Assembly: GCF_037042905.1 (NCBI RefSeq)
Contig: NC_087255.1
Location: 21,824,001 to 21,888,000 of the forward strand
Source of the DNA: Lytechinus pictus
Lineage: Eukaryota
Reading direction: 5' to 3'
Length of the DNA: 64,000 bases
Below, in pieces: positions 31,701 through 61,700 of this stretch (position 1 is its first letter; each line of letters opens with the position of its first letter). The translations under genes were made by a program, and so were the position numbers. The notes beneath the pieces were generated by a model, which was not told where the DNA came from, searched no databases, and was given only the letters and a program-made list of their open reading frames with translations.

Positions 31701-34700
31701 CACGTTTCGGGTCCATAATATCCATTAGGATAGTCAGCACTCATAATCATCCCATCCCCGTCAACTATGATACGTCCACACTCTGAAGAATAATATAAGA
31801 TAATAAATGATAATTAGATTTGTTTAGTAAATGAAGAGGCTTTAATAGGAGGAAATTATAATTTGTTTACAAATTTTCGGCATTACTCCTATTTTGTTTA
31901 AGATCAGTAAGCTCAATCTGTAATGAAAATCATAAGTCAGAAAAAATTGGAACCAGTGGGATTCGAACCTGTCATCTACTGCTTTCCGGGCAGCGATATA
32001 TTTGTTTGTTTATATTGCTTTACACCTACCTTATCAGAAGTCTCTAAGCCCTCTACAGTAATGCAGCATAATTACCCTGGCTTTAGCAGAGCAGCTGTTA
32101 CAAGCGCTGCGTTTAAGGAATAAATTCCTATCAGGTACCCATTCACCTCACCTGGGTTGCGTGCAGCACAATGTGGGTAACTTTCTTGCTGATGGAAAAC
32201 ACGCCATGGCTTGGAATCGCACCCCCGTCCTTCAGATTGAAAGACGAGAGTCATAACCACTAGACCACAATGCCCCCACAAAGAATATGCATCATTGTTT
32301 TTAAAAGTTTGAGACCAACTTTCACAAGGGAATCACACAGTTCATGATGAAGGAGAGAGAAAACAGATTTTCCCACAGAACTTCCATGGCTAACAATCTC
32401 AATCAGTCAGGGATATAACATCTATTTTTTAATGATCCCATCATGCATATGTTGCATAATAAAGGAATGAATTCAAATACATTACATACATGTTTCAGGA
32501 CTGCAACAACAAATTTACCTGTTGGCTATGGGAACTGGGTGGTCTATATACAAAATCAATGAGAATTACGGAATACTGTAGACAACAGGGTAATACAGGC
32601 CAAAGACGGGATAGCATTTTTAATTCATTCTCATTTAATTTTTAGAAAATATAATATTCAATGGATTCAGAAGAACTTTATACCATGAAACCAAAATAAC
32701 TTAATTAATTCCAAGTCATTTTGATCTGGACCCATAACCTAATTTTAACATCATCATTAAAAAAAAATCACTGGTGAAAAATAAGTACAGTATCACCCCC
32801 AAGGGCATTTTTACCACATAGTTTTATGTGGATGTATTTACCTGAAAATGTGGTTGCATTAGCTGGTCCAATTCTTGGCAGTTCCAGTCGATCTGGGATC
32901 AAAGCAGCAACATGGAACTCATAGGTCATCGATGGAGATAGATTAGGCACAGTCAGAGATGATAAGTTACCACCGTAGACTACATGGAACTGTGTAACTG
33001 AAAGATATGTAATTAAGATGCAATATAGATCACACATGAAAGAGAGAAAAAGACACAATAGCTAGATAAATTTACATCGATTCTAAGATAAATGAAAGTA
33101 GTTGCAGTTAACACTGATATCATGAGAAAGTCTGTTAAACCAAGTTTAATTGTCACTCTATCATCCTACATCTACATGTAGGTGTGGCACATTTACATAT
33201 ACTGAACTTTGTAAAATAAAAAAAAATCTTAGCTAAAGGACATTCACACTGAAGATCGCCAACTCAGATATGCACATGTGGGGCATTAAATTTTCATTGC
33301 TTGGAAGAAGATCCAACGATTTGCCAGGATATTTCGCTAATTTCTCAGCAATTACACAATTTCTTCCAGATTGATTTGGCACATATTTTTACATACAGAC
33401 ACCTCCGTGGTCACTTTATTGGATTCTGTATGAACTCATGATGAAATCATCACCACAGCTCACATTTATCTTTGATTCATTTTATTTCATGAAATATGGA
33501 GAAAAAAAAACCAGTAACAGCAAAATTGAGCATCATACTAAATTTAATGCATGGCTTTCCATGAAGGTTATAATAAACTGACAAGGCTAGAGGGCCCAAA
33601 GTAAAGTGAAAAACATTATAAAACAAGTGGAACACCTCTGGCAGTCTCGCCTGCATTACGCAATTTAATATCGCAGCAGTGCTAACTTTGAAAACTACTA
33701 TAAAATAATCATTCACAAAAACATCATTCATATAATGACATAATACTACGTTCATTGACCATAAATGACATTTGAACAGAGACTTAAGACTGTCAACTAC
33801 ACCCATGTCCACATTTCATTCACTCTATCCATAAACTTTCAAAGTTATGATGGCACTTAAACAATTACCCCAACATGGCCTAAGTTTATTGACCTTAACT
33901 GACCTTTGACTTGGTTCTGTGACCTGAAACTCACAGGGGATGTTCAGTGATGCTTGATTACTCTTATATCCCAAGTTTTATGAACTAGATCCATAAACTT
34001 TCAGAGTTAGGATGGTAATTCAACAAATACCCCCAACACGGCCAAAGTTCATTGACCTTTAATGACCTTTGACCATGGTCATGTGACCTGAAACTCGTAC
34101 AGGATGTTCAGTCATACTTGATTACTCTTATGTCCAAGTTTTATGAACTAGATCCATAAACTTTCAGAATTAGGATGGTAATTTAACAAATACCCCCAAC
34201 ACGGCCAAAGTTCATTGACCTCAAATGACCATTGACCATAGTCATGTGACCTGAAACTCGTACAGGATGTTCAGTGATACTTGATTACTCTTATGTCCAA
34301 GTTTTATGAACTAGATCCATAAACTTTCAGAGTTAGGATGGTAATTCAACAAATACCCAACACGGCCAAAGTTCATTGACCCTAAATGACCTTTGACCTT
34401 AGTCACGTGACCTGAAACTCAAGCAGGATGTTCACTAATACTTGATTAACCTTATGCCCAAGTTTCATGAACTAGGTCCATATACTTTCTAAGTTATGAT
34501 GTCATTTCAAAAACTTAACCTTCGGTTAAGATTTTGAAAATAATTTTCCCAACATGGTCTAAGTTCATTGACCCTAAATGACCTTTGACCTTGGTCATGT
34601 GACCTGAAACTCAGGCAGGATGTTCAGTAATACTTGATTAACCTTATGTCCAAGTTTCATGAACTAGGTCCATATACTTTCTAAGTTATGATGTCATTTA

Positions 34701-37700
34701 AAAAACTTAACCTTAGGTTAAGATTTGATGTTGACGCCGCCGCCGCCGTCGGAAAAGCGGCGCCTATAGTCTCGCTCTGCTATGCAGGCGAGACAAAAAT
34801 GATAAAAAATAAAACACAAAGTTTCCTAGGCACACTCTGCTTCCAGATTCCTGGAATTTTCCTGAAAAAACAGAACCAAATAAATAATTCAATATCGTCC
34901 TGTTTTGGAAAAAGTTAGGCACACTGCAAAGACTGGGAAACATAAATGATAGTAATACATATTTAAAGCTCAAGTATTAAATTTGAAATGACAAATTGGT
35001 TTTTCTTTAATACAAAAACTCCTACATTCAACAAAACAAATTTATGAAAACCCTTAAAGACAAAACTAAAAGTTTCTCTGGAAAAAAAAAAAGTTAAACA
35101 AATAAAATGTATAGAAATCTACAAGACTATTGTGCAATAATTCTTACTATCCAATGGTTCTCCTTGCAGTCCATAGTAGATCTTATATCCATAGACATCA
35201 CATGTGATATTAGATAGAACCCAAGAAACATGTATCTCTGTGTTTGATAGAGGGGATGCCATCACATCACGGACATTCATATCGGCAGAGGTGAAGTCTG
35301 TAACATCAAGTAACAGGATATCCACATTGGTCTGTATTCTGGTTAAATCTAATCTCTGATCCAAATTTGTGGTTAAACCCTTATTAAACTGGGGGGGGGG
35401 GGGGGCGGTCAATTTGACCCCCCTAGACAAATTTTGTCACTACGCCGTTGCACTAATATTCTTTACTGCGCCGCTCACTGAATTTTCATTTTCACATCTT
35501 GCGCATCTTTTGAGACCAAATTTGCGACGCCCAGGTAAGTGGTTCCGAAATTAGGCAACATTTGTAAGTGCATGTCAGACCCAAATTTGCTTTAAAACAC
35601 GTGATTCCACGTACAAAGTCAATGCAAATTGTGTTTTACAAACCAAATATCATAATGTATGATTATTTTTACTTTTGTTGGTTTAAATGGAATTATTTTA
35701 TGCTATTCATGATCGCAAAAGGGTCCCCGACAAAGTTCATTGGAAAAAACACAGGTTAAAAAAACAATAAAATACATAAGAAATTAATTATATATTTGCA
35801 ATTTTTTATGGATATTTGTCCGAAATGTAAATATTGACACTCTCACCAAAAATTAGCATTCTTCTAGCTATATTAATTGAGTTAAAGGCAAAAACATACA
35901 CAAAAACCCAAATTTAGGGCAAATTTCAATACGCTTATTTGCATAAATTAATAAAAAAGTATAAACAATTAATTTTTTAAAGTCTTGTAGTTTACATCTG
36001 GCTCTACTCTACGCATGTGCAAATTTTTGTGGCCATCGCGCAATCAGCGGCCGAGATCTGAGGGGGGGGGGTCAAATTGACCCCCCCAGTATATCCTGGT
36101 CTGAAAAAGCCCAGTTAAGATAGGGTTAACTATGGAAAGCCAAATGTGACACTAATCTCCAGCAGTAGAGGTACATTTGGTGTCCAATTAATTCATTACT
36201 GTCTGGAAATGATAATGGAATACAAGGCTAGGAATGCTGATTTTTTTTTATCAAATCATAATGGAAATCCACACTGTTATGTATACATATTAACCTATCA
36301 AGATTTTAAGATACAGTGTATTTTAATTCAAAATTATGATCATGAACTATTGGATCATGCATGATTGCTTGACTGTTTCATAAATGACATGCAGGAAAAG
36401 GAATATTGTTCAACCAATTATGAAATATTTCTCATTGAAATATAATATTCTGATTATCAGATCAATATGGTGTCCTTCCATTTTTATTTTGGTGAAAAAG
36501 GATGATATCTGGGTCAAATAACATCCACTATCAACCTGGAGGTTTTACAATGTAAGGTTTCTGGAGAGATAAGAAAATTCTAAAGTAACAATGCAACTTT
36601 AAATTCTGGGTCCACCTGCACCCCCAAATCACCCCCAATCAGTTATATCTAGAGGAGAGACCTGCAGGTCATAGTGATTCAGTTTGCATTTCGCCTCCCA
36701 GGCACAGGTGAAGCCAAACAAATATTAACAATAACAATAATATTATTAATAAATAAACTTGCCTTTAGGTGTAATCTCACAGATATAATAGTTTGGTTTG
36801 TCGCAGATATCATCAATGACCTGTCCGCTAGTTGAACTGAGAGCACCGCAGTCATGGAGACCGTTTCTAGGGTAACCCGTCTCCCAGATGGTATTTTGCC
36901 AATCAGTAGGGGCATCACAGGTCACCCAGCGCCAGTCAGACTCAACCGAGAAATCAGAAAAACCTACCAGAAAAGGAAAAAATATATCTCATTTATCAAA
37001 GTAATATATTTACAACATTGAATATTAACTCGTTATTAGTGGTTTCAGTATGAGTATCATAATTTATGTATGATTGTTTATTTTCCTCTTTATCGGTTAC
37101 AGGAGCAAATCTTCCAGATATATTGACACTTGTGGATTTATACTCCCTCACATTTCTGACATGCATAGCAAAAAGGCACCAACATAAGAGAAACAATTTC
37201 CTTACAGATACACAAATACTTCTTTTAACACAATTTACATCTTATCTGTTAGTTGACATGTCCACATCTAATGTAGATTACTTTACAAAATATTTAAGAT
37301 TCTCTCACAGAATCTGATATGCCCAAGACACAGGCACCAATATAAGAGAGAGAAAAAAATATATATTTACAGATACACACATCCGTCTTTCAACAGAATT
37401 TACCTCTTATCTGTTAGTTGACATGTCCACATCTAATGTAGATTACTAAACAAAATATTTAAGATTCTCTCACAGAATCTGATATGCCCAAGACACAGGC
37501 ACCAATATAAGAGAGATAAAAAATATATATTTACAGATACACACATCCTTCTTTCAACAGAATTTACCTCTTATCTGTTAGTATGACATGTCCACATCTA
37601 ATGTAGATTACTAAACAAAATATTTAAGATTCTCTCACAGAATCTGATATGCCCAAGATATAGGCACCAATACAAGAGAGAGAAAAATATATTTACAGAT

Positions 37701-40700
37701 ACACACATCCGTCTTTCAACAGAATTTACCTCTTATCTGTTAGTTGACATGTCCACATCTAATGTAGATTACTAACAAAATATTTAAGATTCTCTCACAG
37801 AATCTAATATGCCCAAGATAGAGGCACCAATACAGGAGAAAAAAAGTATATTCCTCCATAGATATGCATCAGTAAGTGCAGGGTCAGGAGTCCATTTCAT
37901 AAAACTTGTTGCAATAACAAACTTGCAATAACAGTTAAAAGCTACTTAAATCCTTCTATCTGATTGGCTGATGGTAAATTTGTTACAGAAATTGTGCATT
38001 TGTTATTATAATAATACTTTATGAAACAGGACCCAATTGTTTAAGATTCACCCATTGGATACCGAACCTACATGTATATGTATGAACGCTGTAGTCTTTG
38101 GAAAAAGAGTGATGAAGCACATCTAGCCAGTCTCCAACTGGTCTAAATAATAAATCCTAGTACACTCACCTATCCACCAATCCTTGATGGGATAGAAATA
38201 CTCGGTGCGATTGACGATGAACTCAAACTCTGCCTGGTCATCGATGATCACCAAGTCTGAGTCTTCGACGACTGCACAACCACTCCTGCCGCTGGACCAG
38301 ATAGATCCATACTCGCTAGTGACGAACCGGTAACAACCGCCATTAGGACCAGATTCATAGTAAGCAGGACAAGGCCCTAGAAGGGGAGAAGGGAAGGAGG
38401 AAAAAATTGACTACTCTTTATTAGGGCTGAGTCAAAACGTTTTAATGCTGTTCAACGACCGTTAAATGAATAAAAGTTTAGCCATTTTGACAGCCATATA
38501 TTAGATCAAGGGAAAAAAAACCTCGCCCAAATTTGCTAAAATTTCATGTTTTACATACATGAAATGGCCAGATATTCTTAATATTTCCTTGAAATTCTAA
38601 GTTCTTGAGTCTAATTTACACTTAATTCTTTGTGAAACACCCCCCCCCCCCCCCCCGATGTAGCAACTTAATTCTTGCTCTTTCTTTTACTCTTGTTAAC
38701 ATGGGTATGAAATTATTTTTATTGATTCAAATTTGTTTATGCATTCTTTTCATCTGGGTTTAACCTTGAAGTTGGTGGCTTAGTGCTATCCACAATAATC
38801 ACTAGAGTAACACAAACAAAGTCATGTAGATATCAAAAATTTCAGTCAGTACTTAAAGTTTTCAATGACACTCAAGAATATGAATTTCTGTGACCCGTAC
38901 GGTACCTGTACCAAGAAAATTCAAATACAGCTTTGAGGGAAAATGATCACTGTAATAGAAGGAACACTGTGTCATCAATAATTTTTCAAAGCCAATTGTT
39001 ATGTTTTCCTTTCATTTGCCTTAATTAGATACAGTTACGAAATGTGTACCCATTGGCTTCAACACATGCAAAACTTCACTGCTCATTCCCCAACCTCCCA
39101 CTGCTTTGTTCAAGCAGAAACTGGAGGATTGAAAGGGAAAAGATGCAGACCTTTGCCAGAGGAACTTAACCCATTGCCTACTGCGACTACATGATCCCTG
39201 TACAAAGCCTATGGGAACTACAAGCTTCGGTAGACAAAGGGTTAGTTCTGTAGTCTTCAATAAAATGTGAAGATCACCTTCAGGTGTGGTGACGTAGACC
39301 GGTCCGACCTGAGGAAGCTCTGCATCAATCCTCTCACCAGCCACAGTGATGCTGTAACGGGTGCTTGGTTGTAACATGGTCAGGTCATAGCTGTCAACGC
39401 CTCCGCCATACACCAAAGCTAGATCGATTGAAACAAAACACTATAGAATATGTATAAGTTGGAATTAAAGTGGAATAGGAAAATAGGTGTTGACTTGAAT
39501 GGAAGACCAGCCAAATTCATTCGGTAAAAAATTACGAATTCAATCTACATTTTGTTTTTGTAAATAAAGATAGGAAAGATAAAATATATAACGATAGAAG
39601 TAATGATGGTGATGATGATGATAATATTGCTGTTGCTCCTCCTCCTCCTACTACTACTACGAATGCTGCTGCTACTACTACTATTACTACTCATTCCTTC
39701 TAATACCACTACTAATNNNNNNNNNNNNNNNNNNNNNNNNNNNNNNNNNNNNNNNNNNNNNNNNNNNNNNNNNNNNNNNNNNNNNNNNNNNNNNNNNNNN
39801 NNNNNNNNNNNNNNNNNNNNNNNNNNNNNNNNNNNNNNNNNNNNNNNNNNNNNNNNNNNNNNNNNNNNNNNNNNNNNNAAATCTATATCTTGAGTAGATA
39901 AGCAAACTAAATTTTTCATTATATCATTCAAAACAGAAAATATTTGGACAGAAAAAACGGCAGATATCAGAATTTTGAACCCAAGTGCACAACATCAAAT
40001 GAATATACAAAATGTTGAATAATGATGCTTTACATATTGTCACGATTCAGACAATGATAGATGAAAAATGAAAAGACATACCCCACTCTGGCTTTCCTCC
40101 AAGGAACGTATCGAGATAGTAGATGTTGTATAGGACGACATCACAATTGTATTCAGATACATTCCATGTGACTCGTACAGTGTCCCATGCAATGGCCGTG
40201 GCATTGACGTTGAACACATTCTCATCCCCTATATTGAAGTCTGGGTAAAAGCAGAAACAAGAAATGAAGAACTATCAAAGACATAGGCTTACATTACTGG
40301 TGGGTGTTTCATAAAGCTTTGGTAAGTTAAGAGCGACTTTAAGAACGACTGGTAATCCTTTCTAGTGGCAAATGGTGTATTTATTGGGGATGGTTTAGCG
40401 CGTAAGAAAGGTTCACCAGTCGTTCTTAAAGTCGCTCTTAACCTACGGACAGCTTTATGAAACGGCCCAGGTTTAATTTCAAAACATATTGAACTTTGAG
40501 TCATGTTGTATTTACTATTGTTCATATGAATGAAAAAAACAAAACACCTAGGACTCAAAGTAGCGGAAACACTTTCAAGATATCTGTAACTGAAAAATCA
40601 TCATTTAATAAATCTCCTGAGGAGATTAATATAATATGTGTTATATCAATTTTGACTGTAGCAAATCAGATTACACTCCCTTGTCTACAGAAGCAGAGTA

Positions 40701-43700
40701 GCGATAAATACCAAATTCACAATTGATTTCAAGACTTATGATCAATTTAGGGACTGAAAACAGACTTGTGATTGATTGCGAGTATCTTGCAATGCCCCAT
40801 AAATGTATCTCACCTTTAGGAGTGACTTCACAGATGTAGTTAATGTTCATCGTATCACAGACCTGATCGTAGACGGTCATGGTGTCTGGGTCGAACACTC
40901 CACAGTCGTCCAGACCATTCTGAGGGTAACCTTCTGCCCAGAGACTTTTCTGCCAATCGTTGGATGACGCACATGTGATCCACCTCCAATCTCCCTCAAC
41001 CGAGAGATCAGAATATCCTTAGAGATCATTTTTTAAAAGTTAGAGTTTAATTGAGACTTAAATATGAAGAGATCACATTGATGCGCATGTGATGCAATTG
41101 AAAACCTTCTCAATGGATCAGAGTAGCCTTTTAATTTTTTTTTTAAGTATTAGAAGAAAAGTAGCCTTCAATAAAAATCAAATGTATTACAATTCCATTA
41201 GATTTTATTTCATTCATCATACAAAATGTAAAATACAAAAATCGCATAAGAAACAGAGAGCAAATAAGAGGTAGGAAAATATATTCAAGAGCAAGAAATT
41301 TAATGAGAATGAGGGTCAGCAGGGTAGACAGCGTTTTATCAATAAATGCTGACCCTGAATATATATATAAAAAAAAACTAAATATTTGTGTTTGAAAGTG
41401 AAAGATAGGTACCCTACAAGCACTTATATCTTCAAAGAAAATTGATAATCTGTAATAGAATTTTCATAAACTACTGACGACCCTCTACATAGGGGTCGAT
41501 CTGAAAATTATATTTTTTTTCCAGTTTACATGGACATTAATCCATTGACCACCAAATTCTCTGTATCCTATTCCAAACTTGGTTCCTGATGGCAGCAGAT
41601 TAAACATATTTTTTTGTGTTTAAACTCACCTATTCTCCAATCTCTGCTATCATTGAACTCTTTAGTCCTATTAGTGATATATTCCAACTCCCATTCATCA
41701 TCAATGATCATCAGGTCATGTTCAAAGTTGTCTCCTGCTTCAGAGCAGTAGAATCTGTGGAAGAGTGAATAATAAATTTACTCACGGGGAACACTGCTCT
41801 CACATCCTTTCTGCCTCAAACAGAAAGAGAGAGGGCGACATATCCGGCACTGTGCTGGTCAGCATAGCCGAACGTGAAAAGTGAATACCACAAGGTCTCT
41901 TGCCTAAATAAAATTACAGATCTGACATGAAGCTTGTCAGCATTGGTGAGTTGGCATTCGTACAGAGAACAGTACTTCCTCAGCCCATGAAAATCAACTA
42001 GGATTTCAGTCACATAGTCAGAGATGATAATTTAGTCAGTGCTGACAACTTCCTTGAAATCACCCCACCCCCCGGTCGAGTTGGCATTCATGGTAATAAC
42101 ATAATAAAATTCAGACACCAACGCATCTCTGAAAATCAAAACTGTCTAAGGATTTCAGTCAAATTGTAAGAGCTGATAATTTAGTCTGCACTGACAACTT
42201 CCTTGAAATATCTGCCCAGTTTAGTAAATTGTGTGAAGTCCCTTGTTCCCTTAAGTTCTGATTTATCCGATCATCCTCAACTATGTGAATGCATCAATAC
42301 CATAACTATTGAACAGAAAATTTGTACAAAGTCCTTTTTTTGTACAAAGAGAAGCACACTGGATAGCCAAGATAATGATGCGCACATGAATATATTAAAG
42401 TCATATTAAAAAATGTTTTAAACAGACATATTCATTTTCGATGTTGGGGCTGCTGGCTTTCTACAGTTGCGGTTGATTGGATTAATCAAAACTCTCTGTT
42501 TGACAGGACACAGAATTTACTGCATTGCCAGGGTTCAAAGACAATGAATTGTGACACATTTGCTCTTGCGACTGTTGCTCCGGTCTTAATATCTCAAAGG
42601 GCATAGGGATTGTAATAGAGGATATGGTTCAGAAAAATGTAAAGATGAGGATTAGGGTTTATTTAGTGTGGGATGTTAGGTTTTATGTCTGGCTTAATAT
42701 GCAGATTTTCCATCAGAGCAACTGTCACTGGAGCAAATGTCATGGAACCTTCCAGATAGGCTACAGAGAAAGCCATCTGCCTCCAAAGAATTGACAGACC
42801 TTACTAAAGTTAAAATTTATCCACTGAAATGTTGCATCTCTCTATACTTTCTTCCATCCCTTCTTCCTGAAACCATCCCTTTGAGCTGTCTGGAATTCTC
42901 CCCCTCCCTTGGCCGCCAATGTCTGATTGACAAGCTCTACTGCAGCCGCCCACCCTTACAGAGTCACTGTCCCCACATGTAAGTCAAACACTTCTCTCAA
43001 TCAATCTTCGTACATACCAAGGACGGCTTGGCCTTGGAACTCACTTCCTGCCATCACATTACCTTAAGCTCCCAACATGGACAGATTTAAGAATTGTGTT
43101 CGGTCGTATTAAATCATTTTGATTTAAAAACTTCGTATTTATTTCAGTCATGGTTTATAATTTGGTAAATACTGTATGGGCCATTTTCATCATTTTTTTA
43201 TGGCAATAAGTGGCCGAAAGAGAAAAACTAAAGTAAAAGTATATCACAAGGAATTGATGCTTATTAGAACTCGTAGCACACACCTTGTATTGTCCCAGTC
43301 GTTACCATAGCGACCAAAGTCTTGGAACCAGTAGCACCGCCCATTTGCTGCTTCCTCATAGCCAGTTGGACATGGGTCTGGATAGGGCACAGCAAGATCA
43401 ATAAATGTATATAATAACATGAACCTGACAAGTTTTCAAGTAGGACAGCATATAAGGAAACAAGCACTCAAAGAAATACAATGTATTTGAATGAATGATA
43501 AAAAGAAAAAATTCTTCAGAAACTTCTTTTACGCCTTCTTTACAAAGGGAGCTCAGGTGGTAGAGCGGGGTTTTGTTTTCCAGTAACCCGAGTTCGATTC
43601 CCAATTGGTGCGCTAGTGCCCTTTGGTAAGGCATTTAAATTCTCATCACCATGCAGGTCCCTCGGAGAGGACCTTAAGCCGTCAATAATAATAATAGTTG

Positions 43701-46700
43701 GATTTATAAAGCGCTTTTTGCCAGAGGATACAAAGCGCTGCTATTATTACCCCGGCTTTAGCTCGAGCTACCTCGATCATCTAATCTAAAAAATCTAATC
43801 TAATTCATGCTTTCTTAGCAATCAGAAAAAAAATCACTACCATTTACCATTTTAAAAACGTCTTCAAATCATGATTCCAGGGTAGAAAAGTGGCAATGAA
43901 ACACATCCCTGGATGTAGATCTCAGACTTACCTGATTGGCCCATGACTGGTCCAACTCTGTCCAGTTCACCAGCAGAGATGAGGACAGCTACACTGATAT
44001 TCACAGTGGTGTTTGGTAATAGGCCTTGAATACGTGCTCCAGAAGAATCTCCACCGTAGATGATTTCTGAATATCAAATAATGAAAACATAAAAAGTCAA
44101 TAGAATTACTATTTTGCCAATAATAAGCTTTTATACTTCAACCTAATGGACACTAAAGTATAAGATATCTTGTGTTGAATTCTACGGAAAAAGAGTGTTA
44201 TAGTGATATCAAATAATTTCCAACAATTAAATAATTGTGTTCCATTGCTAATTGGATTCTTATTGTGCCAAAACTAATTCCATTTATAAGTCAGTCTAAG
44301 TCAGTGCACAAAATCTTGTTTTTTTTTACATGTTTTGAATGGGACAATGGCAGACCTCATAAAATTGTATTGATCTATAACTGAAGAACATAATTATTTT
44401 CTGGTTTGAATGCAGATAGATATTAAAATGATAAAGAACGATATGATTTATTCTATTTTATCAATACCATTACCAGCTGGACCATTGTGTGCAATGTTAG
44501 GCAAGGCATTCAAGAAATTAACAGGAAATATTGTAACCAAAAGCCATGTTTGAATAGAGAGAAGGGCGTACCTTGGAAATCACACAGTAAAGCCATGTTA
44601 AGATTTGGTGCGACAAGGCTCAGCAACATTTTTCTTTTTTTTTAATTCTGTTCACACATGGCAATATAAAATGCTTCACTTTTGCTTAAATACACACATC
44701 CTTAAATCTCAAGACTATGGTCAAAGGTATGGTAACAAATCTCATGAAACATGACAATTCCATAATGATGTGATGATTCAAGTTAAATACATAATGTGTC
44801 TATTTTGTGCTAATGTTGTTAAGGAAGTTGACTGGTCACCAGTCTTCTTAACGTCTCATATCTGAAAGACTACGTACAGAAAATGTTGTTTTGTAGTGCC
44901 AGGTCGAAAAAAGGACTTAAATGAACATAACATAATTTCTTCGTAAATGCTGATTTTCAAAATCAAAGAGAGGCAAAATAAAAATAAATAAAACTTACTG
45001 AAAATAAACAAAGTTAAATTTCGTTTTAGGTCGGATACCTTGCAAAAAGTCAGTGTCTTCAGGTGGATTCCACTATAAAGGCACTCTGCAACTTCTTGTA
45101 GCTGCTTTTCTGAATTCCCCATTGTTTTGTCTATGATGAAGTAATAATAATAATATTCCGCATTTTTATAGCGCTTAGCACATCGAGCGACATCTCTAAG
45201 CGCTTTACAGATACATTATTATCCTGGTCATCGGATCGGCCTTGCATGACCACATACAATGTATGCACCTTCTCCACTCCCTGGGGAGCGTTACAACAAG
45301 AATTCCAAGATTCAATTGCTAGGCATACTACATAGGATTTTGCATCCTACCGCGTACCCAATCAACAAGTGGGTGGAGAGTGGCAAATTGTGGATTGACG
45401 CCTTGCCAAAGGACGCTAGGCTATGGTGGGATTCGAACACACAACCCTCTGATTACAAGGCGAGAGTCAGAACAGCTACACCATGGCGCTTCCGCGACAA
45501 TTGGTAATGAAAGAAAATAAACACATTATCATCTTTCCAGAGCTTGTGAGCTTTCACCTACTCATTTCTGCAGGCTTCTTCAGACTAGCGCTCACTCGCC
45601 GTAGATGGAGTAACATCGGCAGCACGGCAGTCCAAGAGAATGTGAATGTACGTAGTAGAAAGTCTGTATTTTCCAGTGTCTCGGCTCACGGAATGTACGA
45701 TGAATCGAGACGCTGGACAATACAAACTTTCTACTACGTACATTCCCATTCTTACCGACTGCCGCTTCTACCCCATCTACATTGAGTCAGCATTAGTCTG
45801 AAGAAGCCTGCAGAACAAGCAGACGAAAGCTCATTGATTGTGGAAAGATGAAAAAATGTGTTTTATTTGAGTTCTACCAATCAGATGAATCTCTTTACAA
45901 GTAATGAAAGGCCGCTTGCGGAATCCCTGCGAAACAGAGGCGGCTCTGACTCTTTGCAAGGTACCTTACATTCAATGCTTACTGGATTCTTCCCTGTCAT
46001 TCTCCATCTCTTGATAATATATCTTATAGCCATAGACATCACATGCATTCTCTGGCACAGTCCATGATATCTCCACACCGTATGAAGCACCACTTGTCTC
46101 CAAATTCTCTACCTTCAGTTCAGTAGGATCAAAACCTGCAATGATAAAAACATTCAGAAATATAATTTTGCTGTAGATGCATTATTTCGATTATGCTGTA
46201 TATTCAAATCATACATCGTTGTATCATTTATATAATTAAGTATTTTATGTTTATGTTATGTTTTATATGGTCGAAAGCTATTTTGAAATTAATATGATTT
46301 GAAAAAGAAAACAAAAAATGGATCAGAAACAACAGGTCACTGGCCTTTTGTTGATCGCCCACATCCACTGAGATCACCTCCCGGCAGAACCTCACGCTTC
46401 GTAAATTTCTTTTTGTCCTGCTTCAATTTGTACATTTGATAGCTATACCTAAAATGGTATTACCCCCCCCCCCCCAGCCTTTATCTTAATTTCACTTATC
46501 TTTGTTTGTTGATTTGTATACTGTTTATGTATCATGTAATCTTTGTGTGTATCATAAGAAATTCTGAATTGATTTGTGCAAACAAATTAAATTTCCATTT
46601 GTACTTGATTGCATTATGGACAATAAAAATATCTGAATCTGTGAATGACTTAATGCGAGTCTTGTCATATCTACGGCTGTGTATGTGACCTATATGTGGC

Positions 46701-49700: not shown

Positions 49701-52700
49701 AGTATGAGGTTCACAAAACATTTGATTGAATCAATAAGAATTCAGAATAAATTTTTTGATGAGTAATTTAAATCGGTTTAGATTAGCTGCCTCTTTTATT
49801 ACTCTGTCCAGAGAATTCCAGAGTTTTGGTCCTGTGAAAAATACAGTTTTGCTAGAAAATACTGTTCTACTTTTGGGTAAGTGATAGTCATTTGAATGTC
49901 TCGTATTATATGAATGTAAAGAAAGAATGATTCTTCTTCTTTACAAAGATACCAAAAACATGAAATTTGGTCAATATTTAGAGCAGCAATGGCCGAATAA
50001 AAAGAGGTGTTTTGGTTCGCACCAAGCTCATTAACTATGCAAAAACCCTCTAGTCATGAATATCACTTGGATAAAAGAAGCTAGTTTTTCAGGGCTTGCG
50101 GACTGACTGATTGACTCAATTTCCCCATAATTTGTCAGTTGGGCTCTTTAAGATGATGAAATTGTTGATATTGTAATAATAGCATAATAACTATGATTGG
50201 ATGATGTTTGAAGGTTTGCATGGTGGTATGAGCAATCGCGGAAGAGGTTTACGGTACAACATGTGTAAAGTCCTGAGATAAGAAGACAGACAGTCGGAAC
50301 ATCGAGTCTACTCTCCTGCTCCTGCTATTACTGTATTCGCCGACTCAAGCCATCCTTCTCTCACCTACTCAAGCCTTCTACCCAAGCCTGCCTACTACTC
50401 AGCTTTCCACTCCTGGTTTACAGTCCTAAGGACTACACTCATTTCGAAAAGAATACTCTACTTTCTAATCTCCACTTTCTTGCCTTTCCAATTCACCCCC
50501 TATTCTATCCACTTTTCTTATCTCAGTCCTTCCAGGACTTTACACATAGTGTACCGTAAACCTCTTCCGAGATTAAATATATTTGGTATCGATAGTGACT
50601 TGAATCTCATAGAAATACAACAAACATATTTGATGTATAAAATGAAATGAATTGACAACTTATCAAAACAGCTAGGACATATCTAAGAATCACATAAAAT
50701 ACATTAAATCAAACTAAATCCCGTCAGTTGAAATTTAATTGAATCATATATTGAACAATGAGGGATGATTATCCACGAGACTCGTCTTCATATAACCTCA
50801 ATAGCCCTGTGGCATAAATATTAATATTGTTAATGAATCTTTGCCATCCAATTGTAACTTCCATGGTAATAATGCCTCACAGCCAATCAATTTCAAGGAT
50901 TTCTTGAAGTCACAACTTATTGATGGCAAAGTTATCATAATAGACCTTATGCATGTGACATCCTAATCTCATAGCGCCCTCCCTCAGAGGATATAGGAAT
51001 AGGTGTAAATGGAGTTGTCAGAGATGAGCCAGCAGCAGCTCACCAGCGTATGCAAGGCAATGGCTTCAGCCTCTAAGATGGTGGCGCAGTGATGTCAATG
51101 CATAAGGTGTATGGTAACTTTTACACAATGGGGTCCATATTCAGTATCAATGCTTTTTAATCAAATGAGGTCATTTCCACATTAATAAAATCATAGAAAA
51201 TCAATATATATCCCATCTTTATGGTCTGGTGGTTATGACTCTTGTCTTTCATTCTGAGGGATGTGGGTTCAATTCCCAGCCATGGCATGCTTTCCTTCAG
51301 CAAGAAATTTGCCCACATTGTGCTGCACTCAACCCAGGTGAGGTGAATGGGTACCCGGTAGGAAGAAATTCCTTGAATGCATCAGCGCCTATATGGCAGC
51401 ACGGCCAAAGCCGGGATAATCATAGTTGCGCTTTGTATCCTCAGCCAAATTAAATCCAGCTATTATTATTATTATTTTATTTTCAAATAACAGTAAAATT
51501 TTCAGCAATACCTGTTGTCGCTGTAATAGGGCCTACTGGACTAAGCTCTATATCTTTGCTAGTATGTGCAGCTATTGTGACATCATACGTCGTGTTTGGT
51601 AGCATGCCTCTGACCACTGCACTAGAGGTATCCCCACCGTAGACAAAAACTGATAATTGCAACAACAACAAAAAAGAAGTTAAATTAATTCTATAAAAAA
51701 GGCAAAACTGACGTAATATGGCATGAAGAAGATTATTACAAAAACGAAAAGAACTTTGCAGATTACACGTGGATATTTAACACCCTCCCCCCTTTAAAAA
51801 AAAGAAAAAAAGACAGACGGTACAAATGAAAATGGAGATAAGGAATTTAAATTTGTCCTATTTCGCATACTTATACTATCATTTGGTCTACCATCAGTTC
51901 GTCCACTATCCACATGGTCTAATTGCCATTTGGTCCACTCACCATTTTGTCTAATAGCCAGTTGGTCCAATAGCCATTTAGTCCAAATACCATTTGGTCT
52001 AATTAGATCAAGTGATAATTGGGTGAAACAAATGAAAATGAAATGGGTATTAGACCAACTGGTTTGGGACGAAATGGTCATAGACGAACTGGTGATTAGA
52101 CGAAGTGATTATTAGACCAAATATTTATTGGACCAAATGGCTGTTAGACGAAATATTGATGGACGGACTGGCATAAGACTAAATGAAGGTAGACCATATG
52201 ATGATTGGATGAGTTGGCAGTAGACGAATCGGCAGTTTACCAGTCATTGCAGTTCACCTAATTTATGTTTACCTTTTCTTATATTTTCATGTACTATACT
52301 GAACTATTTGTGATATTTTGAAAACGTCCTGTTACTTTGATTGTACTTTGTTTTATTTTGTTACACAAAAATGAATAAACTCTAAATATAAATCTAATCT
52401 GATTGTAACTGGCCTAAATAAAGGAAAGAAGGAAAACAATATTCAAGATCAGTGCAGTAATAATTACATGTATAGAGTTATTCAAGGTCTAGAAACATGA
52501 ACTGTAGCTTATAAATAGATATAAATAGATATTTTGCAGAAGTAGAGGGATAACTTGATGACTAGAAAGCTTGTCATCCCAGAATTTTATTGCAACAACT
52601 TTTTTGATTTCATTTCATCAACCTTTTGTGTTGATAAAAGGACATTTGTTTGCATTTGTATTAATTCTTGTTTGCTTGAAGCACTTAAAAACATTGTACA

Positions 52701-55700
52701 TGTATTACATGTGATATAAATGTTGCATTTTGTTACTATTACAACAAATTTAGAGAAAAATACTACAACATTAATAATCAAATAAACATCATACATAATT
52801 CTTGTAGCACATTTCATCTTACTTGAAGCCCTGGTAGAGATATCTCCAGTCAAGTAATAGTAAATACGATAGCCAATCACATCACAGCTTGTCATAGATA
52901 CAGTCCATGTGACCTCTAGGCCATAGGTTGTTGCCGTGGCATTAAGGTCATGAGGATTAGCATCTTCATCCCTGAATCCTAAAGGTCGTAAGAATTGAAA
53001 ATATAGTGACAAATTTAATTTGCAGTTTAATGTTTCACCAAAGAAGACAAAGTAAAAAAATGTTTGAAGTTACACTAAGGTAAAGTCTGACATAAAAAAA
53101 TGATGATGAAGAATGAATAATAAAGCAAAAAAATATATACATATATATAATAAGCTCTCTCATCAAATGATCAATTGTTAAACCTTCTCAAGGAAAATAT
53201 TCGTCATCAGATTAGGCATTTAACATTTAGGTGCTATCTCACACAGATAATTGAGAGGGGTATCAAAAACCAGATCAACAATCAATTGTTGGCTTTCCTC
53301 ATTTAAGATTACTTAAAATGAAATCTTTTTGTTACTTATCTTTCAGAGCACATCAAAAGTAATTATAATCTAAACCCTATGTGATAGGAACTCATTGAAT
53401 TTTTTTATCATTATCATTATTTTCACAACAATTAAATCAAACTAATAATGTCTTTCCTTAATACTTTGCAACTATCAGATAATTGAAATAAACTCACCAA
53501 ATGCCTTTATTATTTCAAAACACTGCTATGATTGTATATGTAAGTAATATCATCTTTAATGTCATGTTCCAAATGCAGATGGTTCCATGACAATTGCTCC
53601 GTAAAGACTTGCTCCGATGGAAAATCGACACATTAAGCCAAACATAAAACCTAACCCCCAAGACTAAATAAACCCTAATCCTCAGCCTCACATTATTCTG
53701 AACCAAAAACTCTATTGCAATCCTAACCCTATACCGTCAGAGATATTAAGACCGGAGCAAATGTCGCGGGAGCAAATGTCATGTCACCATGCAGATTGTA
53801 TAGTCATATATATAATTTTTTTATTTGTTGTTTTTATGTTCAAGAACCATTTGTTGTTTTTATGTTCAAGATGAATTTCCACTTCTAGAAATAAATACTT
53901 AAACTTACTTATATACTTATACAAATCCAAGACATAATAAGTCCATACCTTTTGGTGCAATCTCACACAGATAACTCAGAGGAGTATCACAGACCAGATC
54001 AACAATCTGACCGTCAGGCTGCAATGCTGCACAGTCTAGACGACCGTTACCAGGGTGACCAGGTACCCATAATGCATCCTGCCAACGAGACGATTCACTG
54101 CAGTCGATCCATCGCCAATCGCCTTCAACAGACTGGTCGGAATAACCTGAAAAATGGTTAGAAATATCGTAAGACTCAAGACGGTTGATGAGGTGAATCA
54201 CTCATGAAGACGGACAATCAGTCTGCCCAAAATGTCTGGTCTTCTCTCCCGCTCCTGCTCTACAGCTCCATTCGCCGACTCATGCCAGCCTTTTCTAATC
54301 GACTCGAGCCTCTCTCACCTCTCCAGCTCAACCAGCCTTCTACTCAAGCCTCTCATCCTGCCTGCTACATGTATTACTCAAGCTTTCCACTCCTTCTGGT
54401 TTACAGTCCTAAGGACTACACTCGATTACGACATACTCTACTTCCTAACTTCCACTTTCTCGCCTCTCCATTTCACCATGATCTCAGTCCTTTCTATGGT
54501 GTACTGTAAACCACTTCTGCAATTGTTCATATCCCCATGCAAACCTTCAAAAATCATCTGAGATGAATCAAGTAAAAAAAACAACTATTAGACAGTTGAA
54601 ATAAAAATTGAAATAAATAAATAGATAAATAATAATAATAGTACGGAAGATGTTGATCATCGTTGTTCATTGTGTAAGTATAGAATCGGTAAAGGAAATA
54701 ATCTCTTGTCTCACGATGCAGCTTACGGTATAAAAGGCGCACGCAGCGAGTGTCCACTTCATTGCCTGACGAAGAATAGCAATTGCAGTCGAAACGTCGC
54801 AATTTCAGTTTGCCGCATCGTGAGACAACAGATTATTTCCTTTACTGATAATAATAATAATAACAATAATACAAATAATATTTATAATAACAATAATACA
54901 AATAATATTAATAATAACAATAAAAATAATTATAATAATGATAATATTAATGATAATAACGATAATAATGCTACTACTAATAATAATATCATTAATAATT
55001 ACATATTGCGCTTATAAAGCACCAAATCTACTCTGTAGCGATCTCAAGATGCTATTTAATAATTATGAAGGAAATTACGAAGCATTTAAAAGAAGTTTTT
55101 TCGGTGTTATTTTTTTAAGTTTCAGAAATTAAATTTCTTTCAATGACATCAGCAGGCAAAACAAATTTTTCTTTCCAGGGGCTATTTTTCACAACTTACT
55201 GCCCAAATCTGCAACATTGGACAAGCTTTAACATTGCAATTAATGGGGATTTCCTGGGCTCTTTTGAGCATTTTGGGGACTACATTGCCCCCAGACACTG
55301 TGTAACCTTTTCCCTGAAAATCAGGAAAACTGTTCCATAACTTAGAAGATGAGTGCACAAATGATCTTTCCCCTCCAGGTTTCGGAAACTCTGGGGGTGA
55401 CAAGAGAACCGGAAGTGGAGGTACGTAAGGATCTTGAAGGGGGTAATGCTCATTACCTATCCACCACATGATGTTCGGATCAATCTCAGCTGTTCTATTA
55501 ATCAAGAAATCCAGCTCCATCGGATCATCGATGATGACCAGGTCAGAGTCGGGCTCGTTGTCGCAGGTCCTTCGTCCCGTGGGCCACCAGGAACCATATT
55601 CCAGGATTCTGAATCGATAGCAGTGGCCATTGGGCCCCTCCTCGTAGTTTTGAGGGCATGGAACTGGACAGTTGTAAGCAAGGAAAACAGATTAATCATT

Positions 55701-58700
55701 GGCAAACTTGGTTGATGCACTAAGGAAGTCTTTAAATCCTGGCTAAAGCTTTGGTACAGGTAAAAAATGTGAATTACACTAGAGTATCAACTAACATGAA
55801 AATCTTTGAAGTGTCGGACCACTTATTTTCAACTGCCTATTCTCTGTGAAATTTCAATATTCAAATCTTGAATTACTAGCGCCCTCTCTCAAATATGTTT
55901 ATATCTTTCTTTAAGAAGGTTCTTTGAGCACTTATCTTACAAATGAAGTGATTGGTTATCAGAAAACTATAAAGATTATATCCTGCATTTTCAACCAATT
56001 TCATGGTCTGGAGCAGGTTATGAATTTATCAAAAAGAATTACCCACACAGATATTTTATATCCATCGAGCACCTGATTAAAATAAGTTTTCATGTAAAAT
56101 TGCAAAAATTAATTCTGTAAAGCGACCCACGGCATACACAACAAATGTTTATGATCAAATTCTTTGAAAAATCTCATTACTTAATTTATGCAAAAAATCA
56201 AAGGTTCGCTCTGATTCATTCTCTGCTAATTATTTTATTGACAGACTCTTTGTAGGATTCTGATTTAATGTACTGAAAAAAAATCTTACAAATTTTTTGT
56301 TTGCTTTTAAATTTTATCTGGATTTCTGTGTTTTCATATTTTTGGTTTTACATCATTTTTTCGATGGAAACCGTCAGCAACTTTATTCTGATCATAAACA
56401 AGCTGAAACTGATTGAGTTCAATCAGTAAAAATAGAAATAATGATATATATATATATATATATATGAATTCTAACTTAAAACACAATTTGGACTGTCTTT
56501 GTACACATATTCATGTTTTGGAGCAATTTGGTGTCATGACATGCATTTACAAAATGTGTAATTTGAGAAAGAGGTACCCTGGGGTTGCAGATTTGGTTTT
56601 AGAAGTTGTACAAAACTTGAATATAAAGATATGAGATGGCATGGCGCCAGCTTTTCGCGTTACAGACTTATTGCAAAAAATGTTGAGGGGTGGGTGGGGG
56701 GGGGGGGGGACTGAATAAAAAAAATGAACAAGTTCAGATCTTGTGAAGATAACACTAACCTGTAGATAAAGTGATTGGTTCTGTTCTACCAAGCTCAATA
56801 TCTTTGCTCGTCATAATAGTAACTGTGATGTCATAGGATGTGTTGGCATGGAGACCAGTGACAGCGCCGCTCATAGATTCACCACCATTCACATACACTG
56901 TGGATGATTACAAAAAGAGAAACAATGGGTGATTTCAAGTCTGGTGTTGGCCTTGGTGTTGGTGTTGAAATTTGGATTGCTTCCCCTGGCTCCAAAACTT
57001 ATTCATACTTTGTAAAACTGATCCAGGTCACATTATTAACACCTCAACAACTAGTGAGTTACTTTTCAGGACCATCTTCATTTTATGTTTGGTGTTATAC
57101 TCTTGTAAAAAATGACCTAACACCAACACCAGAAGGTCAACACCGTACTTGAAATCACCCATTAAGATGATTAGGTCATCATCAATAAGACTCTTGATAT
57201 TCATCAATCATGTATTAAATTAGACATTTAAATTTTAAAACACAGACCAAACTTTCAGATGCAGAAACTCATATATACACTGGTTTCATGCTACTATGGA
57301 TTTACAATTAAGATAACGGCATTACAGTTGATAGATAATAACATATTTACATGTATTCATTTATTCAATTTCTGAATTAGAGTAGCCCTATTAGTAGTTA
57401 AGTACAGTTCTACTGGGGACATTTGTGTGTACATGCACATAAATCTGTATGCACTTCATAATGTGTAATCACTAATTGACAAGGCTTGATATTTTGACAT
57501 TTCTAGGGCAAGGCTCCTTTTTAATAGGATGTATTTCTATATTACAGCACAAATGGGTAAAATAAAAATAAAAGGGGCATCAATTCCAATCAATAGGGTA
57601 TCCACCCTCATAGAATATGATTAATTTAAAGGTAAAAGACAAAAGTTGCAGCAAACAATTATTTCATGAGAAAGTCTTTTAAATCATGGTTAATCGTAAA
57701 AATATTATCATACATCTAGATCTGGTACATTAATGTAAACTTATCTTTGTAAAATCATGAAATCTTAGCTCAAAATCGATAATTCTGATATCTAGCATAG
57801 AAAAGCATATGTGGGACAATGTATCAATATTGCTTTGAAAAATACCTGACATTTGATGGAATTCGGTGCTTATTTCGCTCAATTCTCAGTGATTACCCAT
57901 TTTCTTCCAGAGTTATTTGGCACATATTTTTTTATTAATACATACAAACACTTTGGTGGTAATTTGATTGGATTATCTTCAAACTCATTTTGAGATCTTT
58001 ACCACAACTAGTATTTATCTTTAAGCCCTGATTGGAATCATCGAGATCACAAGCATTAAGTGTAAACAAAGGTCAAAATTAAAATCTTGGCCACATGCAG
58101 GAACATTATGACCATTATGATCGTAATCATAAAAACTATTATCATTATAACCATCATGCAGGAATCCACAATATATTTCCTGATTCCTGTTGTTTTGTCT
58201 AGATCAGAAGTTGGGGGATTGAAAGTTGTAAAAGTAGAAAGTGTGATCCCCACTAAAAAAAAAAATCCTGAAATTTAAAGCTTATTGATGTTTTCTGAAA
58301 AGAGATTCAATCCAAAGTACACGAAATACAGAGATCTTAAACAATGGAGCAAACCTGATGTAATCACATCACTGTCTTCTCCTGTTATTTCATAGTAGAT
58401 CTTGTATCCTACAGCATTGCATCCATTCTCTGGTAGGTCCCATGTGACGTCGATGGTATACATCCCTCCTGTTCCTCTTACATTCTCAACAACTTGAGAA
58501 TTAAGATCAAAATCTGAAAATATGATTTTAAAATGTTATCAGTTTCACCATCATCATCATCATCATCACTGTCACCATCAGCAACATCATCATCATCATC
58601 GTCATTATCTTCGTAATCTTCATCATCATCATCAACGCTATCATTGTCACCATCATCATCATCATCATTGTCATCATCATATTATCACTCCTATCATCCC

Positions 58701-61700
58701 CCTCCTCCTCATNNNNNNNNNNNNNNNNNNNNNNNNNNNNNNNNNNNNNNNNNNNNNNNNNNNNNNNNNNNNNNNNNNNNNNNNNNNNNNNNNNNNNNNN
58801 NNNNNNNNNNNNNNNNNNNNNNNNNNNNNNNNNNNNNNNNNNNNNNNNNNNNNNNNNNNNNNNNNNNNNNNNNNNNNNNNNNNNNNNNNNNNNNNNNNNN
58901 NNNNNNNNNNNNNNNNNNNNNNNNNNNNNNNNNNNNNNNNNNNNNNNNNNNNNNNNNNNNNNNNNNNNNNNNNNNNNNNNNNNNNNCCATTATCATCATC
59001 ATCAACAACAACCTCATCATCCCCCTCCCCCTCCTCATCATCCTCATCATCACCCTCCCCCTCCTCATCATCTTCATCATTATCCTCCCCCTCATTATCC
59101 TCATCATCACTAATTATCATCATAAAATAGAGCAGCTTTGCACCTGTAGGATACAGTTCACACAGATAGCTGAATTTTCCATCACAGGAAAGATTGATGA
59201 TGTCACCGCTTGGCTGAAGAGCAGCACAGGTAAGATCACCATCAGAGGGGTAATCTGGAGCCCAGAGAGTATCCTGGTAGCCGGTAGTGGTAGTACAGTC
59301 CACCCATCTCCATTCTCCAGCAACATGAAGGTCAGATAAACCTAGAAGAACAAGTAAGAGCTTTAGACCAAGCGATGTATTCTGGAGCCCATCAGCTATC
59401 CTGATAATTTGTAATGGTAGAACAATCCAACCATCTCCATTTTCTAGGATCACCTAAATGCCAATAATCTTCCAATTCTGTGGTTCATGAAGAATCAAAC
59501 TCCTCTCTTGGGTCGAGTGCAGCCAATGTGGATATATTTCTTGCTGAAGGAAATTAACGCTTGGAGTTGGATTCAAACTGATGCTCCTCTGATTAAAAAG
59601 CCAGATACAGTGGATCGCATTACCGAACACTTTTCATAAATTCAATCGTATCAAACACAATTTACAACTATACCGGGTGTGAGAAAGTAAAATGGAATTA
59701 TTTAATCAGAGGTAGGTTTAGCAATTACTTTCTTTCCCAGGGGCAAAGCCCCCGAGAGAAATTTGTTACATTACCAGACCAACCGAGGATGAATACTTCC
59801 CACTATGCTTTTGAAAGAAACGGCCGGTACATTTGTTTTATATCCCTTCCGTATCAAAGTTTGAACGAAAAATCATTGTTATCTAGTCCTAATTAACCCA
59901 TCTTCATGATCTGGAAAGAAACCTAGATTGGCTAAGCTCTAATACAGGGTATATGCAAAATTGGCTTATCATCTAAGCTGGCCAATTCCCACTATGCTTT
60001 CGAAAGAAACGTCTGGTATATTTGTTTTATATCCCTTCTATATAAGTTTGAATGATAAAATATTTGTTATCTATTCCTGATTGACCCATCTCCATGATCT
60101 GGAAAAAATCTAGATTGGCTAAGCTCTAATTTATGCAAAATTGGCTTATCATCTAAGCTGGCCAGTTCCTGGATAGACTGTGCGTGGCTGCTACCAGCCC
60201 AACCCAGCTCACTCATGGTGGTGTGGTGTTGAGTGGCAGCTGTGAGCGCTTATACAATTTCACTTACCGGTTGTGAAGGTTTTGAACGATTCCTGCAGAA
60301 CTAAACTTGAGCAACCCAAATCTTTTGATGATCAAATGATGGCCATCATAAATTTTATTTCAGCATGCAGATTCATTATAAACAAGCAAGACGCAATTTC
60401 ACATTGACATTTGAAATTTATGATTCAGCTATTGCGCTGCACTCAACGGAACCTGATGAAGCGTCTGAGCCAACGCATCACTATACTTACCCGGTGGACA
60501 CAGCCCGTTGTGTGCTGTTTCTGATTGCATTGTTTCCAGTCGGACGCAAAATAGAAAAAAAAATACTATTCTATTCTGACATCACAAACTATTTTGATCT
60601 CCAATGAATTTAATTTTTCTGGTAAAATTATTATAAGTCACATGAAGGGCTCTCGACCAATCCAATAGCAAAAAATATTTAGTAATGGATATAGTATTTT
60701 TCTATATAAGCCGGTCGGTTTTATGCAATACTCAGCATGGATCAAATTTGAGATTTCACTTACCAATCCACCATGTCATATTTGGGTTTATCTCCACACT
60801 TCTGTTGACAAGAAAAGCAAGTTCCTCAGGATCGTTGATGACAGCTAGATCAGAGTCTTCTACATTGTCACATGTCCTTCGACCAGTCGGCCAAGTAGAA
60901 CCATAGTCTAGTATCCTGAATCGGTAACAGTGACCATTGGGGCCTTCCTCGTAATTGTCTGGACATTCATCTGTGGAATGGAAACAAACATGCATGTCAT
61001 GGTTACTGGAGGATCTAATCAAAGGCAAACATGAAATCTGTTACATGAAAATTATGTTGATGAAAATGAGGAATATGTTGAGGCTAGCTCAAATTAAATT
61101 TCCAAAGGTTACTTTTTTTTCAAATTATTAATCAAAATTGAATTCTTGGAATGATAACACCAATATTTTATAATCCTTTTCATCAAAATGGCAAATTATT
61201 TAAAGCTTGATCATAGCTTACCTAGAAATGAAACTATGACTTAGAGTATGATGTGAATATCAAAAAAATACCAAGCTACATAACAATAAAGATAATACCC
61301 AAGCTGAAAAAAAAATGGTAAAACCGCTACATGTATTTGGCAAGTTAAGCACGATGATCTAACAAGCCTGTGACCATAATGGCGTTATGAGGTGAGGCAC
61401 AACTGATATTATGCTGAAGTCTTACCAAAGTTGACATTGCTTGGCAATGTGACTTCCATGGTACCTTTCACCGACAATTTCCAGTGCATCAAGGAACTTT
61501 GTTAAAGCTTTGAATACCCCTTTTACTCAAATTTTGATATTTAGTCTTAACAAATCAAGTATTATCTACACAAGATATGAACATGCTTATAATTGTTTTT
61601 ACATTTACCTGCTATACATGTACAAACAATTGTTCTACTTCTCAAAATTAAAGTGTCTAATACCACATACATGTAGGTTAAACCCATTTGGCCACCTACA

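Follow-up and report, generated by a model that had tools for sequence, protein, structure and literature searches.

The window analysed here is a 64,000-nucleotide stretch of the genome of the sea urchin Lytechinus pictus (NCBI RefSeq assembly GCF_037042905.1, contig NC_087255.1, positions 21,824,001 to 21,888,000 of the forward strand), which a search of its own genome placed at G000:C11:21824001-21888000. Its minus strand contains five units (A-E) of one gene, and each unit consists of a C-type lectin-like domain (CTLD) followed by a fibronectin type III (FN3) domain. Each unit also has two odd cysteines, one per domain. A disulfide bond between them would make each CTLD and the following FN3 one covalently stapled two-domain module.

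Gene structure and transcription at the locus

The gene model was built by tblastn of open reading frame pieces against the window, together with inspection of the splice sites. On the minus strand, 22 exons were modelled from 62724 to 32842; the five-unit block has its first acceptor at 60970 and its last donor at 32842. Each unit is laid out as CTLD exon 1, CTLD exon 2, FN3 exon 1, and FN3 exon 2. The exons are phase 1-1 throughout, with lengths that are multiples of three, except for an extra phase-2 intron of about 1.5 kb that cuts the first CTLD exon of unit D at 43284/41754. This exon also has a small insertion (DNFEH). All of the exon boundaries are AG/GT; the sole exception is the GC donor of the second CTLD exon of unit E (AAAG/GCAAGT at 36763), which gives a GC-AG intron. 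The model is collinear with, and about 96% identical to, the L. pictus protein LOC129271967 (P0164), which is annotated only as "uncharacterized". The exons and the other parts of the gene are as follows.

62587..62724, minus strand: FN3 exon 2 of the preceding (sixth) unit
60764..60970, minus strand: unit A CTLD exon 1; 3 Cys (C0, C0', C1); Pfam Lectin_C positions 3-44
59144..59341, minus strand: unit A CTLD exon 2; 4 Cys, the extra one in WRWVDC; Pfam Lectin_C positions 48-106
58355..58513, minus strand: unit A FN3 exon 1; single Cys, in GCNAVGY; N gap in the intron upstream
56760..56897, minus strand: unit A FN3 exon 2; no Cys
55457..55663, minus strand: unit B CTLD exon 1; RNA junction to the next exon
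53949..54146, minus strand: unit B CTLD exon 2; WRWIDC; RNA junctions on both sides
52823..52978, minus strand: unit B FN3 exon 1; SCDVIGY; RNA junctions
51512..51649, minus strand: unit B FN3 exon 2; RNA junction 51649/52823
47837..48040, minus strand: unit C CTLD exon 1
47024..47221, minus strand: unit C CTLD exon 2; WRWVDC
45983..46135, minus strand: unit C FN3 exon 1; ACDVYGY
43932..44066, minus strand: unit C FN3 exon 2
43284..43377, minus strand: unit D CTLD exon 1a, followed by the extra phase-2 intron
41630..41754, minus strand: unit D CTLD exon 1b
40814..41017, minus strand: unit D CTLD exon 2; WRWITC
40082..40240, minus strand: unit D FN3 exon 1; NCDVVLY; N gap in the intron downstream
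39278..39418, minus strand: unit D FN3 exon 2; a later acceptor inside the exon in annotated P0164
38170..38376, minus strand: unit E CTLD exon 1
36763..36963, minus strand: unit E CTLD exon 2; WRWVTC; GC donor
35148..35297, minus strand: unit E FN3 exon 1; TCDVYGY
32842..32997, minus strand: unit E FN3 exon 2; last FN3 before the CUB domains
17418..31786, minus strand: 3' part of the same gene, located by tblastn with the tails of P0164 and P0001 (Acanthaster); three Pfam CUB matches
31786-26488, minus strand: exons of the three CUB domains
23903-22184, minus strand: juxtamembrane domain and transmembrane segment
20922-17418, minus strand: cytoplasmic tail

Both N gaps among these exons are intronic. 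In unit A, the gap at 58713-58986 falls between the end of CTLD exon 2 at 59144 and the start of FN3 exon 1 at 58513; in unit D, the gap at 39717-39878 separates the two FN3 exons (40082/39418). The exons beside both gaps join in frame, and the domains are whole without the gap sequence, column for column with the other units. P0164 is collinear with the model over the first of these junctions; at the second, its acceptor lies further into the same FN3 exon.

Raw RNA-seq reads of two runs and two RNA contig sets were compared with the model. The unit B junctions (51649/52823, 52978/53949, and 54146/55457) are exact in the RNA, with GT..AG introns on the minus strand. One RNA contig of 3323 nt contains all four unit B exons and about 2.4 kb towards the downstream units. 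From the unit B junctions, the gene is transcribed and spliced as modelled. A reading of the locus as a pseudogene or an artefact was rejected because of the open frames, the canonical splice sites, and the RNA junctions.

Several further features were observed in the introns. Two stretches (51832-52263 and 53560-53847) have an RNA depth hundreds of times that of the exons, with many mismatches and loose ends, and most likely belong to an abundant family of transcribed repeats rather than to the mRNA of the gene. Two pseudo-exons on the minus strand were also found. The one at 59377-59439 copies the start of the unit A CTLD exon 2 (WRWLDCSTITNYQDS, followed by a stop and WAPEY), and sits just upstream of the real acceptor of that exon. 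The one at 53226-53282 copies the end of the unit B CTLD exon 2 (IVDLVFDTPLNYLCEIAPK, with C3 changed to F), and lies in the following intron.

The gene extends beyond the window. Directly upstream, at G000:C11:21888001-21923572, there are six further units and a signal-peptide exon (MDECIKLIFLALFGTFALTRG) with a phase-1 GTAAGT donor, which joins directly onto the first CTLD. Downstream of unit E, three CUB domains come first, followed by the juxtamembrane domain, the transmembrane segment, and a short tail that ends near window position 17418. The predicted product is thus a type I membrane protein, in which a signal peptide is followed by 11 CTLD-FN3 units and three CUB domains, and then by the juxtamembrane domain and the transmembrane segment.

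Domain identity and the two odd cysteines

The CTLD exon halves of the window match Pfam Lectin_C (PF00059) at positions 3-44 and 47-106, with E-values of 5e-3 to 2e-6. Whole homologues score 98-293 bits, well above the cut-off, and PF00059 is also carried by the L. pictus protein of about 96% identity. The five window CTLDs, and all of the complete homologous units, have Cys at the six canonical columns of the profile hidden Markov model (HMM) and a WWIG/WRIG motif, as in long-form CTLDs. The FN3 exon halves match Pfam fn3 (PF00041) at positions 2-38 and 48-82, below the cut-off as halves; whole homologues score 69-122 bits, well above it, and the AlphaFold2 (AF2) model has seven strands with a predicted local distance difference test score (pLDDT) above 90.

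The EPN/QPD and WND motifs of Ca2+ site 2 were not found in the five window CTLDs. At the corresponding positions, the window units have DYP/GHP/GSP/GYP/GYP and INL/VDL/EAQ/YDQ/IDD. The CTLDs of this gene are therefore probably protein-binding modules or structural beads, not sugar binders. The Asp and Glu of the (Y/L/F)SDxxVEG motif after the WIG strand, at the start of CTLD exon 2 (for example YSDQSVEGDW at 54120-54146), are near-invariant (D74 and E78 of the 25-unit alignment described below). In classical CTLDs, the equivalent residues are ligands of the auxiliary Ca2+ site 1. By analogy, a structural Ca2+ may be kept at site 1, though site 2 is lost.

The number of cysteines per exon is the same in all five units: three in CTLD exon 1, four in CTLD exon 2, one in FN3 exon 1, and none in FN3 exon 2. 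The initial annotation had reported exactly seven Cys in each CTLD, six of the long form plus one in WRW-x-(D/T)-C, and the exon-by-exon counts agree with this in 5/5 units. The seventh Cys is the last residue of WRW(V/I)(D/T)C (WRWVDC, WRWIDC, WRWVDC, WRWITC, and WRWVTC in units A-E). The statement that Gly is usual at this position was also borne out, as the same HMM column is Gly in 279/423 CTLDs of FN3-less proteins. The single Cys that had been noted in the B-C loop of each complete FN3 occurs in the motif x-C-(D/N)-(V/A)-x-(G/L)-Y (GCNAVGY, SCDVIGY, ACDVYGY, NCDVVLY, and TCDVYGY in units A-E). Its loop position was upheld by DSSP on the AF2 model of a homologous unit, in which this residue, Cys169 in the numbering of P0001:266-500, lies between strand B (157-163) and strand C (171-180); the extra CTLD Cys is Cys86 in the same numbering.

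To find homologues, a profile built from the second CTLD exons of the five units was searched against 1.84 billion representative proteins. Alternating CTLD-FN3 proteins were recovered from echinoderms and hemichordates only, and a further search brought in Patiria, Asterias, Amphiura, Diadema setosum, and L. pictus. The family of LOC129271967 includes Acanthaster planci LOC110985794, Patiria miniata LOC119737915, S. purpuratus LOC754003, and hemichordate "cubilin-like" proteins. Its members share the alternating CTLD-FN3 units, the same two odd cysteines, and the CUB domains that follow. In the databases they are predictions, named just "uncharacterized" or "cubilin-like".

Two related loci were found in the same genome. 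A paralogous array of at least 11 CTLD-FN3 units lies on the minus strand of G000:C1:14488001-14548000, and is far more divergent (30-62 bits). One of its units has the FN3 in a single exon (14147-13779, where base 1 is G000:C1:14488001). This array keeps QPN/QPD-like and WND-like motifs, and its sequences suggest that these paralogues may be sugar-binding. In addition, G000:C9:26458001-26478000 contains a near-identical partial copy of units D/E at about 26467665-26471981 (minus strand), with FN3 exon 2, CTLD exon 1, and CTLD exon 2. Its CTLD exon 2 has a frame break (WRWV/../DAPTD) exactly at the place of the extra Cys. This copy is probably a pseudogene fragment or a segmental duplication.

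Both odd cysteines are present in all 11 units of the window gene, in 11 units of the C1 array, and in two units on C6. The C1 and C6 counts include two FN3 exons and one exon start that were overlooked by the first scan and found by eye. Database units were taken from three starfish, a brittle star, two crinoids, five sea urchin species (L. pictus included), and three hemichordates. Every complete unit has both cysteines. There are about 70 such units, of which about 24 are from this genome and about 45 come from 13 other species of echinoderms and hemichordates. Several apparent exceptions were rejected on inspection. Some are shifts of the Cys by one residue (WSQINTC, WQWLDTC), as in Antedon P0002 412-538, and others are truncated gene models. 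The cysteines of C1 units 39775 and 33347 lie in parts missed by the first scan, and C1 unit 14827, which seemed to have no FN3, has it in a single exon missed at first.

In an alignment of 25 units with a mean column identity of 40%, just 10 columns are invariant, and both odd cysteines are among them. The others comprise two Trp and one Gly of the core, one Tyr, and canonical Cys (five of them; the sixth column is near-invariant). Judged from this alignment, the Cys pattern is far beyond chance, because both residues fall in the 10 invariant columns at such a mean identity. The spacing from C4 to the FN3 Cys is 37-38 residues in 42/46 units, and the linker between the two domains is conserved as CE(I/V)xPK(D/G)F. 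Among the FN3-less CTLDs, which came from the same profile search, Cys occurs at the extra position in 1/385 domains of full-length proteins that consist of CTLDs alone. The other 38 Cys-bearing matches are single-exon fragments of at most 210 aa with the WRWVDC signature of the family. As far as these sequences indicate, the exchange of Gly for Cys is confined to CTLDs with this FN3 behind them.

Proposed pairing of the cysteines within the CTLD-FN3 unit

From the sequences and the models, we infer that an intra-unit disulfide bond quite probably joins each CTLD to the next FN3. The WIGL strand of the CTLD is followed by a short strand, and the seventh Cys, in place of the Gly of WxWxDG, would come directly behind the latter, where the chain enters the long-loop region. 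This Cys would bond to the single B-C loop Cys of the next FN3. The CTLD chain has its entry and exit at one end, and the bond would pin this domain against the FN3. The outcome would be a fixed block of 235 residues, repeated 11 times in a type I membrane protein.

Three independent arguments bear on the choice of partner. A CTLD with seven Cys comes first after the signal peptide in the window gene and in Acanthaster, Anneissia, and Diadema, and the last FN3 before the CUB domains retains its Cys. If pairing occurred across units, the Cys of the first CTLD and that of the last FN3 would be left over; this argues for pairing within the unit. In the hemichordate "cubilin-like" proteins, the CTLD-FN3 module comes right after a CUB domain with no FN3 before it, and both cysteines are kept, which points to the same pairing. 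In the FN3 fold, the B-C loop is found at the pole beside the domain's own N-terminus. Given this position, with the strand order as in the AF2 model, the loop would face the preceding CTLD.

The structures of one unit and of a longer segment were predicted by AF2 on alignments of 25-28 natural units. One CTLD-FN3 unit gave a mean pLDDT of 95.3 and a predicted template modelling score (pTM) of 0.86. This pTM is high for domains of 135 and 100 residues, so a fixed mutual orientation of the two domains, as one body, is confidently predicted. The FN3-CTLD-FN3 segment gave a pLDDT of 93.7 and a pTM of 0.73, which is roughly the value expected of a rigid 235-residue pair plus one domain of uncertain orientation. 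The linkers from each FN3 to the CTLD of the next unit are short, and the orientation across them is less confidently predicted. The initial annotation had proposed an inter-domain disulfide and, as its result, a rigid repeating rod, with predicted structures of units as a check. The intra-unit bond is favoured by the co-conservation, the spacing, the terminal modules, and the single predicted body; the rod of stapled units is not established by the models, as the three-domain segment is less fixed. A Foldseek search of the three-domain model against the Protein Data Bank (PDB) matched only tandem FN3 proteins, with low TM-scores; none of the matches was a solved structure of a CTLD-FN3 arrangement. 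A PDB sequence search returned only separate CTLD or FN3 entries, and no such pair.

Several observations weigh against the intra-unit bond or limit the case for it. Loss of either Cys was not found among the approximately 70 complete units, so there is no co-change to correlate. The independent loss of one Cys in orthologues, which had been named as a result that would count against the bond, was thus not seen; for the covariation test that had been suggested across orthologues, there is joint presence without exception, which is invariance and not true covariation. The sequences indicate a very strong joint constraint on the pair, by shared ancestry rather than by repeated co-change. In several annotated isoforms, a CTLD with seven Cys is followed by a half-FN3, which consists of the second exon only and has no Cys:

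Acanthaster: P0001 635-678; P0152 635-678 and 817-860
Patiria: P0160 659-702
Diadema antillarum: P0003 395-437

The Patiria half-FN3 occurs in P0160 only, and is absent from isoforms X1/X2. Such skips stay in frame because all of the exons are phase 1-1. The half-FN3 isoforms may be prediction artefacts, in which an exon was skipped or missed, or they may be real. In the latter case, the Cys of the preceding CTLD would be left without its partner. One S. purpuratus unit also has three further Cys in its FN3, which gives an odd total.

The odd cysteines might instead be bonded between molecules, linking copies of the protein to each other or to another protein; this would give covalent multimers or a cross-linked surface coat, and the use of the Cys would be like that of the seventh Cys in snake-venom C-type lectin-like subunits. 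Long-form CTLDs with seven Cys and an inter-chain odd Cys are already known in snaclecs of the factor IX/X-binding protein type, and a half-FN3 isoform would leave the CTLD Cys with no partner in cis. However, the two cysteines always occur together, in adjacent domains of fixed order and spacing; the extra Cys appears only in CTLDs before this FN3; and AF2 packs both domains as one body. Eleven inter-chain pairs per chain would also mean uncontrolled cross-linking. Intermolecular bonding is therefore considered unlikely. Both cysteines might also be free or otherwise used, as a metal ligand, a redox-sensitive thiol, or in a local structural role, and be conserved independently of each other. 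Invariance alone is no proof of pairing, but conserved unpaired Cys are generally rare in extracellular modules, and the joint appearance of the two in just this domain combination, along with the predicted rigid packing, would have to be a coincidence; we regard such independent roles as improbable. A staple across the unit boundary, from the Cys of one FN3 to the CTLD of the next unit, might be suggested by the short FN3-to-CTLD linkers and by the closeness of the CTLD termini, which puts both FN3 neighbours near its base, but it is very improbable, given the cysteines kept in the terminal and hemichordate modules, a B-C loop that points away from the following domain, and the fall in pTM when the upstream FN3 is added.

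With the disulfide within the unit as the preferred reading, the CTLD-FN3 pair seems, on balance, likely to be an undescribed stapled composite domain. It would have arisen once, before the echinoderm/hemichordate split, and would since then have been a single evolutionary and structural unit, used in giant receptors as tandem arrays that reach 11 and, elsewhere, singly between CUB domains. A literature search found no published account of the CTLD-FN3 module, its Cys pair, or any CTLD-FN3 disulfide. If the bond is true, two very common extracellular domains would make a new composite building block, and the stapled module would be a new way to fix a C-type lectin-like domain onto a stalk. The bond would also explain the constant co-occurrence and order of the CTLD and the FN3 in this ambulacrarian family, and would set the domain boundaries for expressing and solving these giant sea urchin surface proteins. 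In scope, this concerns a structural detail within a single protein family.

Comparison with known systems

The snaclecs, such as the factor IX/X-binding protein, are likewise long-form CTLDs with a seventh Cys at or close to the long-loop region, and this Cys links them covalently to another domain. The snaclec link joins two CTLD chains with loop swapping, whereas the proposed partner here is an FN3 in the same chain. The seventh Cys of the window CTLDs, unlike that of the snaclecs, is at the Gly of WxWxDG. The mannose-receptor family (PLA2R, DEC-205, MRC1/2) gave the best solved-structure sequence matches to the CTLD part, and these proteins also have tandem long-form CTLDs. However, they have no FN3 between the CTLDs, and the extra-Cys column is Gly in such tandem-CTLD proteins.

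Contacts between a CTLD and a β-sandwich domain are found in other systems. In the complex of a lectican CTLD with tenascin FN3 (PDB 1TDQ), the CTLD likewise sits on an FN3, and the FN3 chain of 1TDQ was among the fold matches. This contact is non-covalent and in trans, in contrast to the bond proposed here. The Ig-CTLD superdomain of invasin and intimin likewise has a CTLD on an Ig-type β-sandwich, but these proteins are bacterial, have the sandwich before the CTLD, and are not known to have an inter-domain disulfide.

A CTLD in a fixed orientation to the next domain has been described at the CTLD-X interface of CD93 (bioRxiv 10.1101/2023.06.07.543655). The "interdomain disulfide" of the same preprint was considered as a precedent and rejected, as that bond is in IGFBP7 and not in the CTLD. 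In the CD93/thrombomodulin group (CTLD and sushi-like domain), and also in the selectins (CTLD-EGF), the CTLD is fixed against the next domain, as proposed for the CTLD-FN3 unit. These proteins use hydrophobic or polar interfaces without a known inter-domain disulfide, and the partner is not an FN3; the window units would instead hold an FN3 against the CTLD by a covalent bond.

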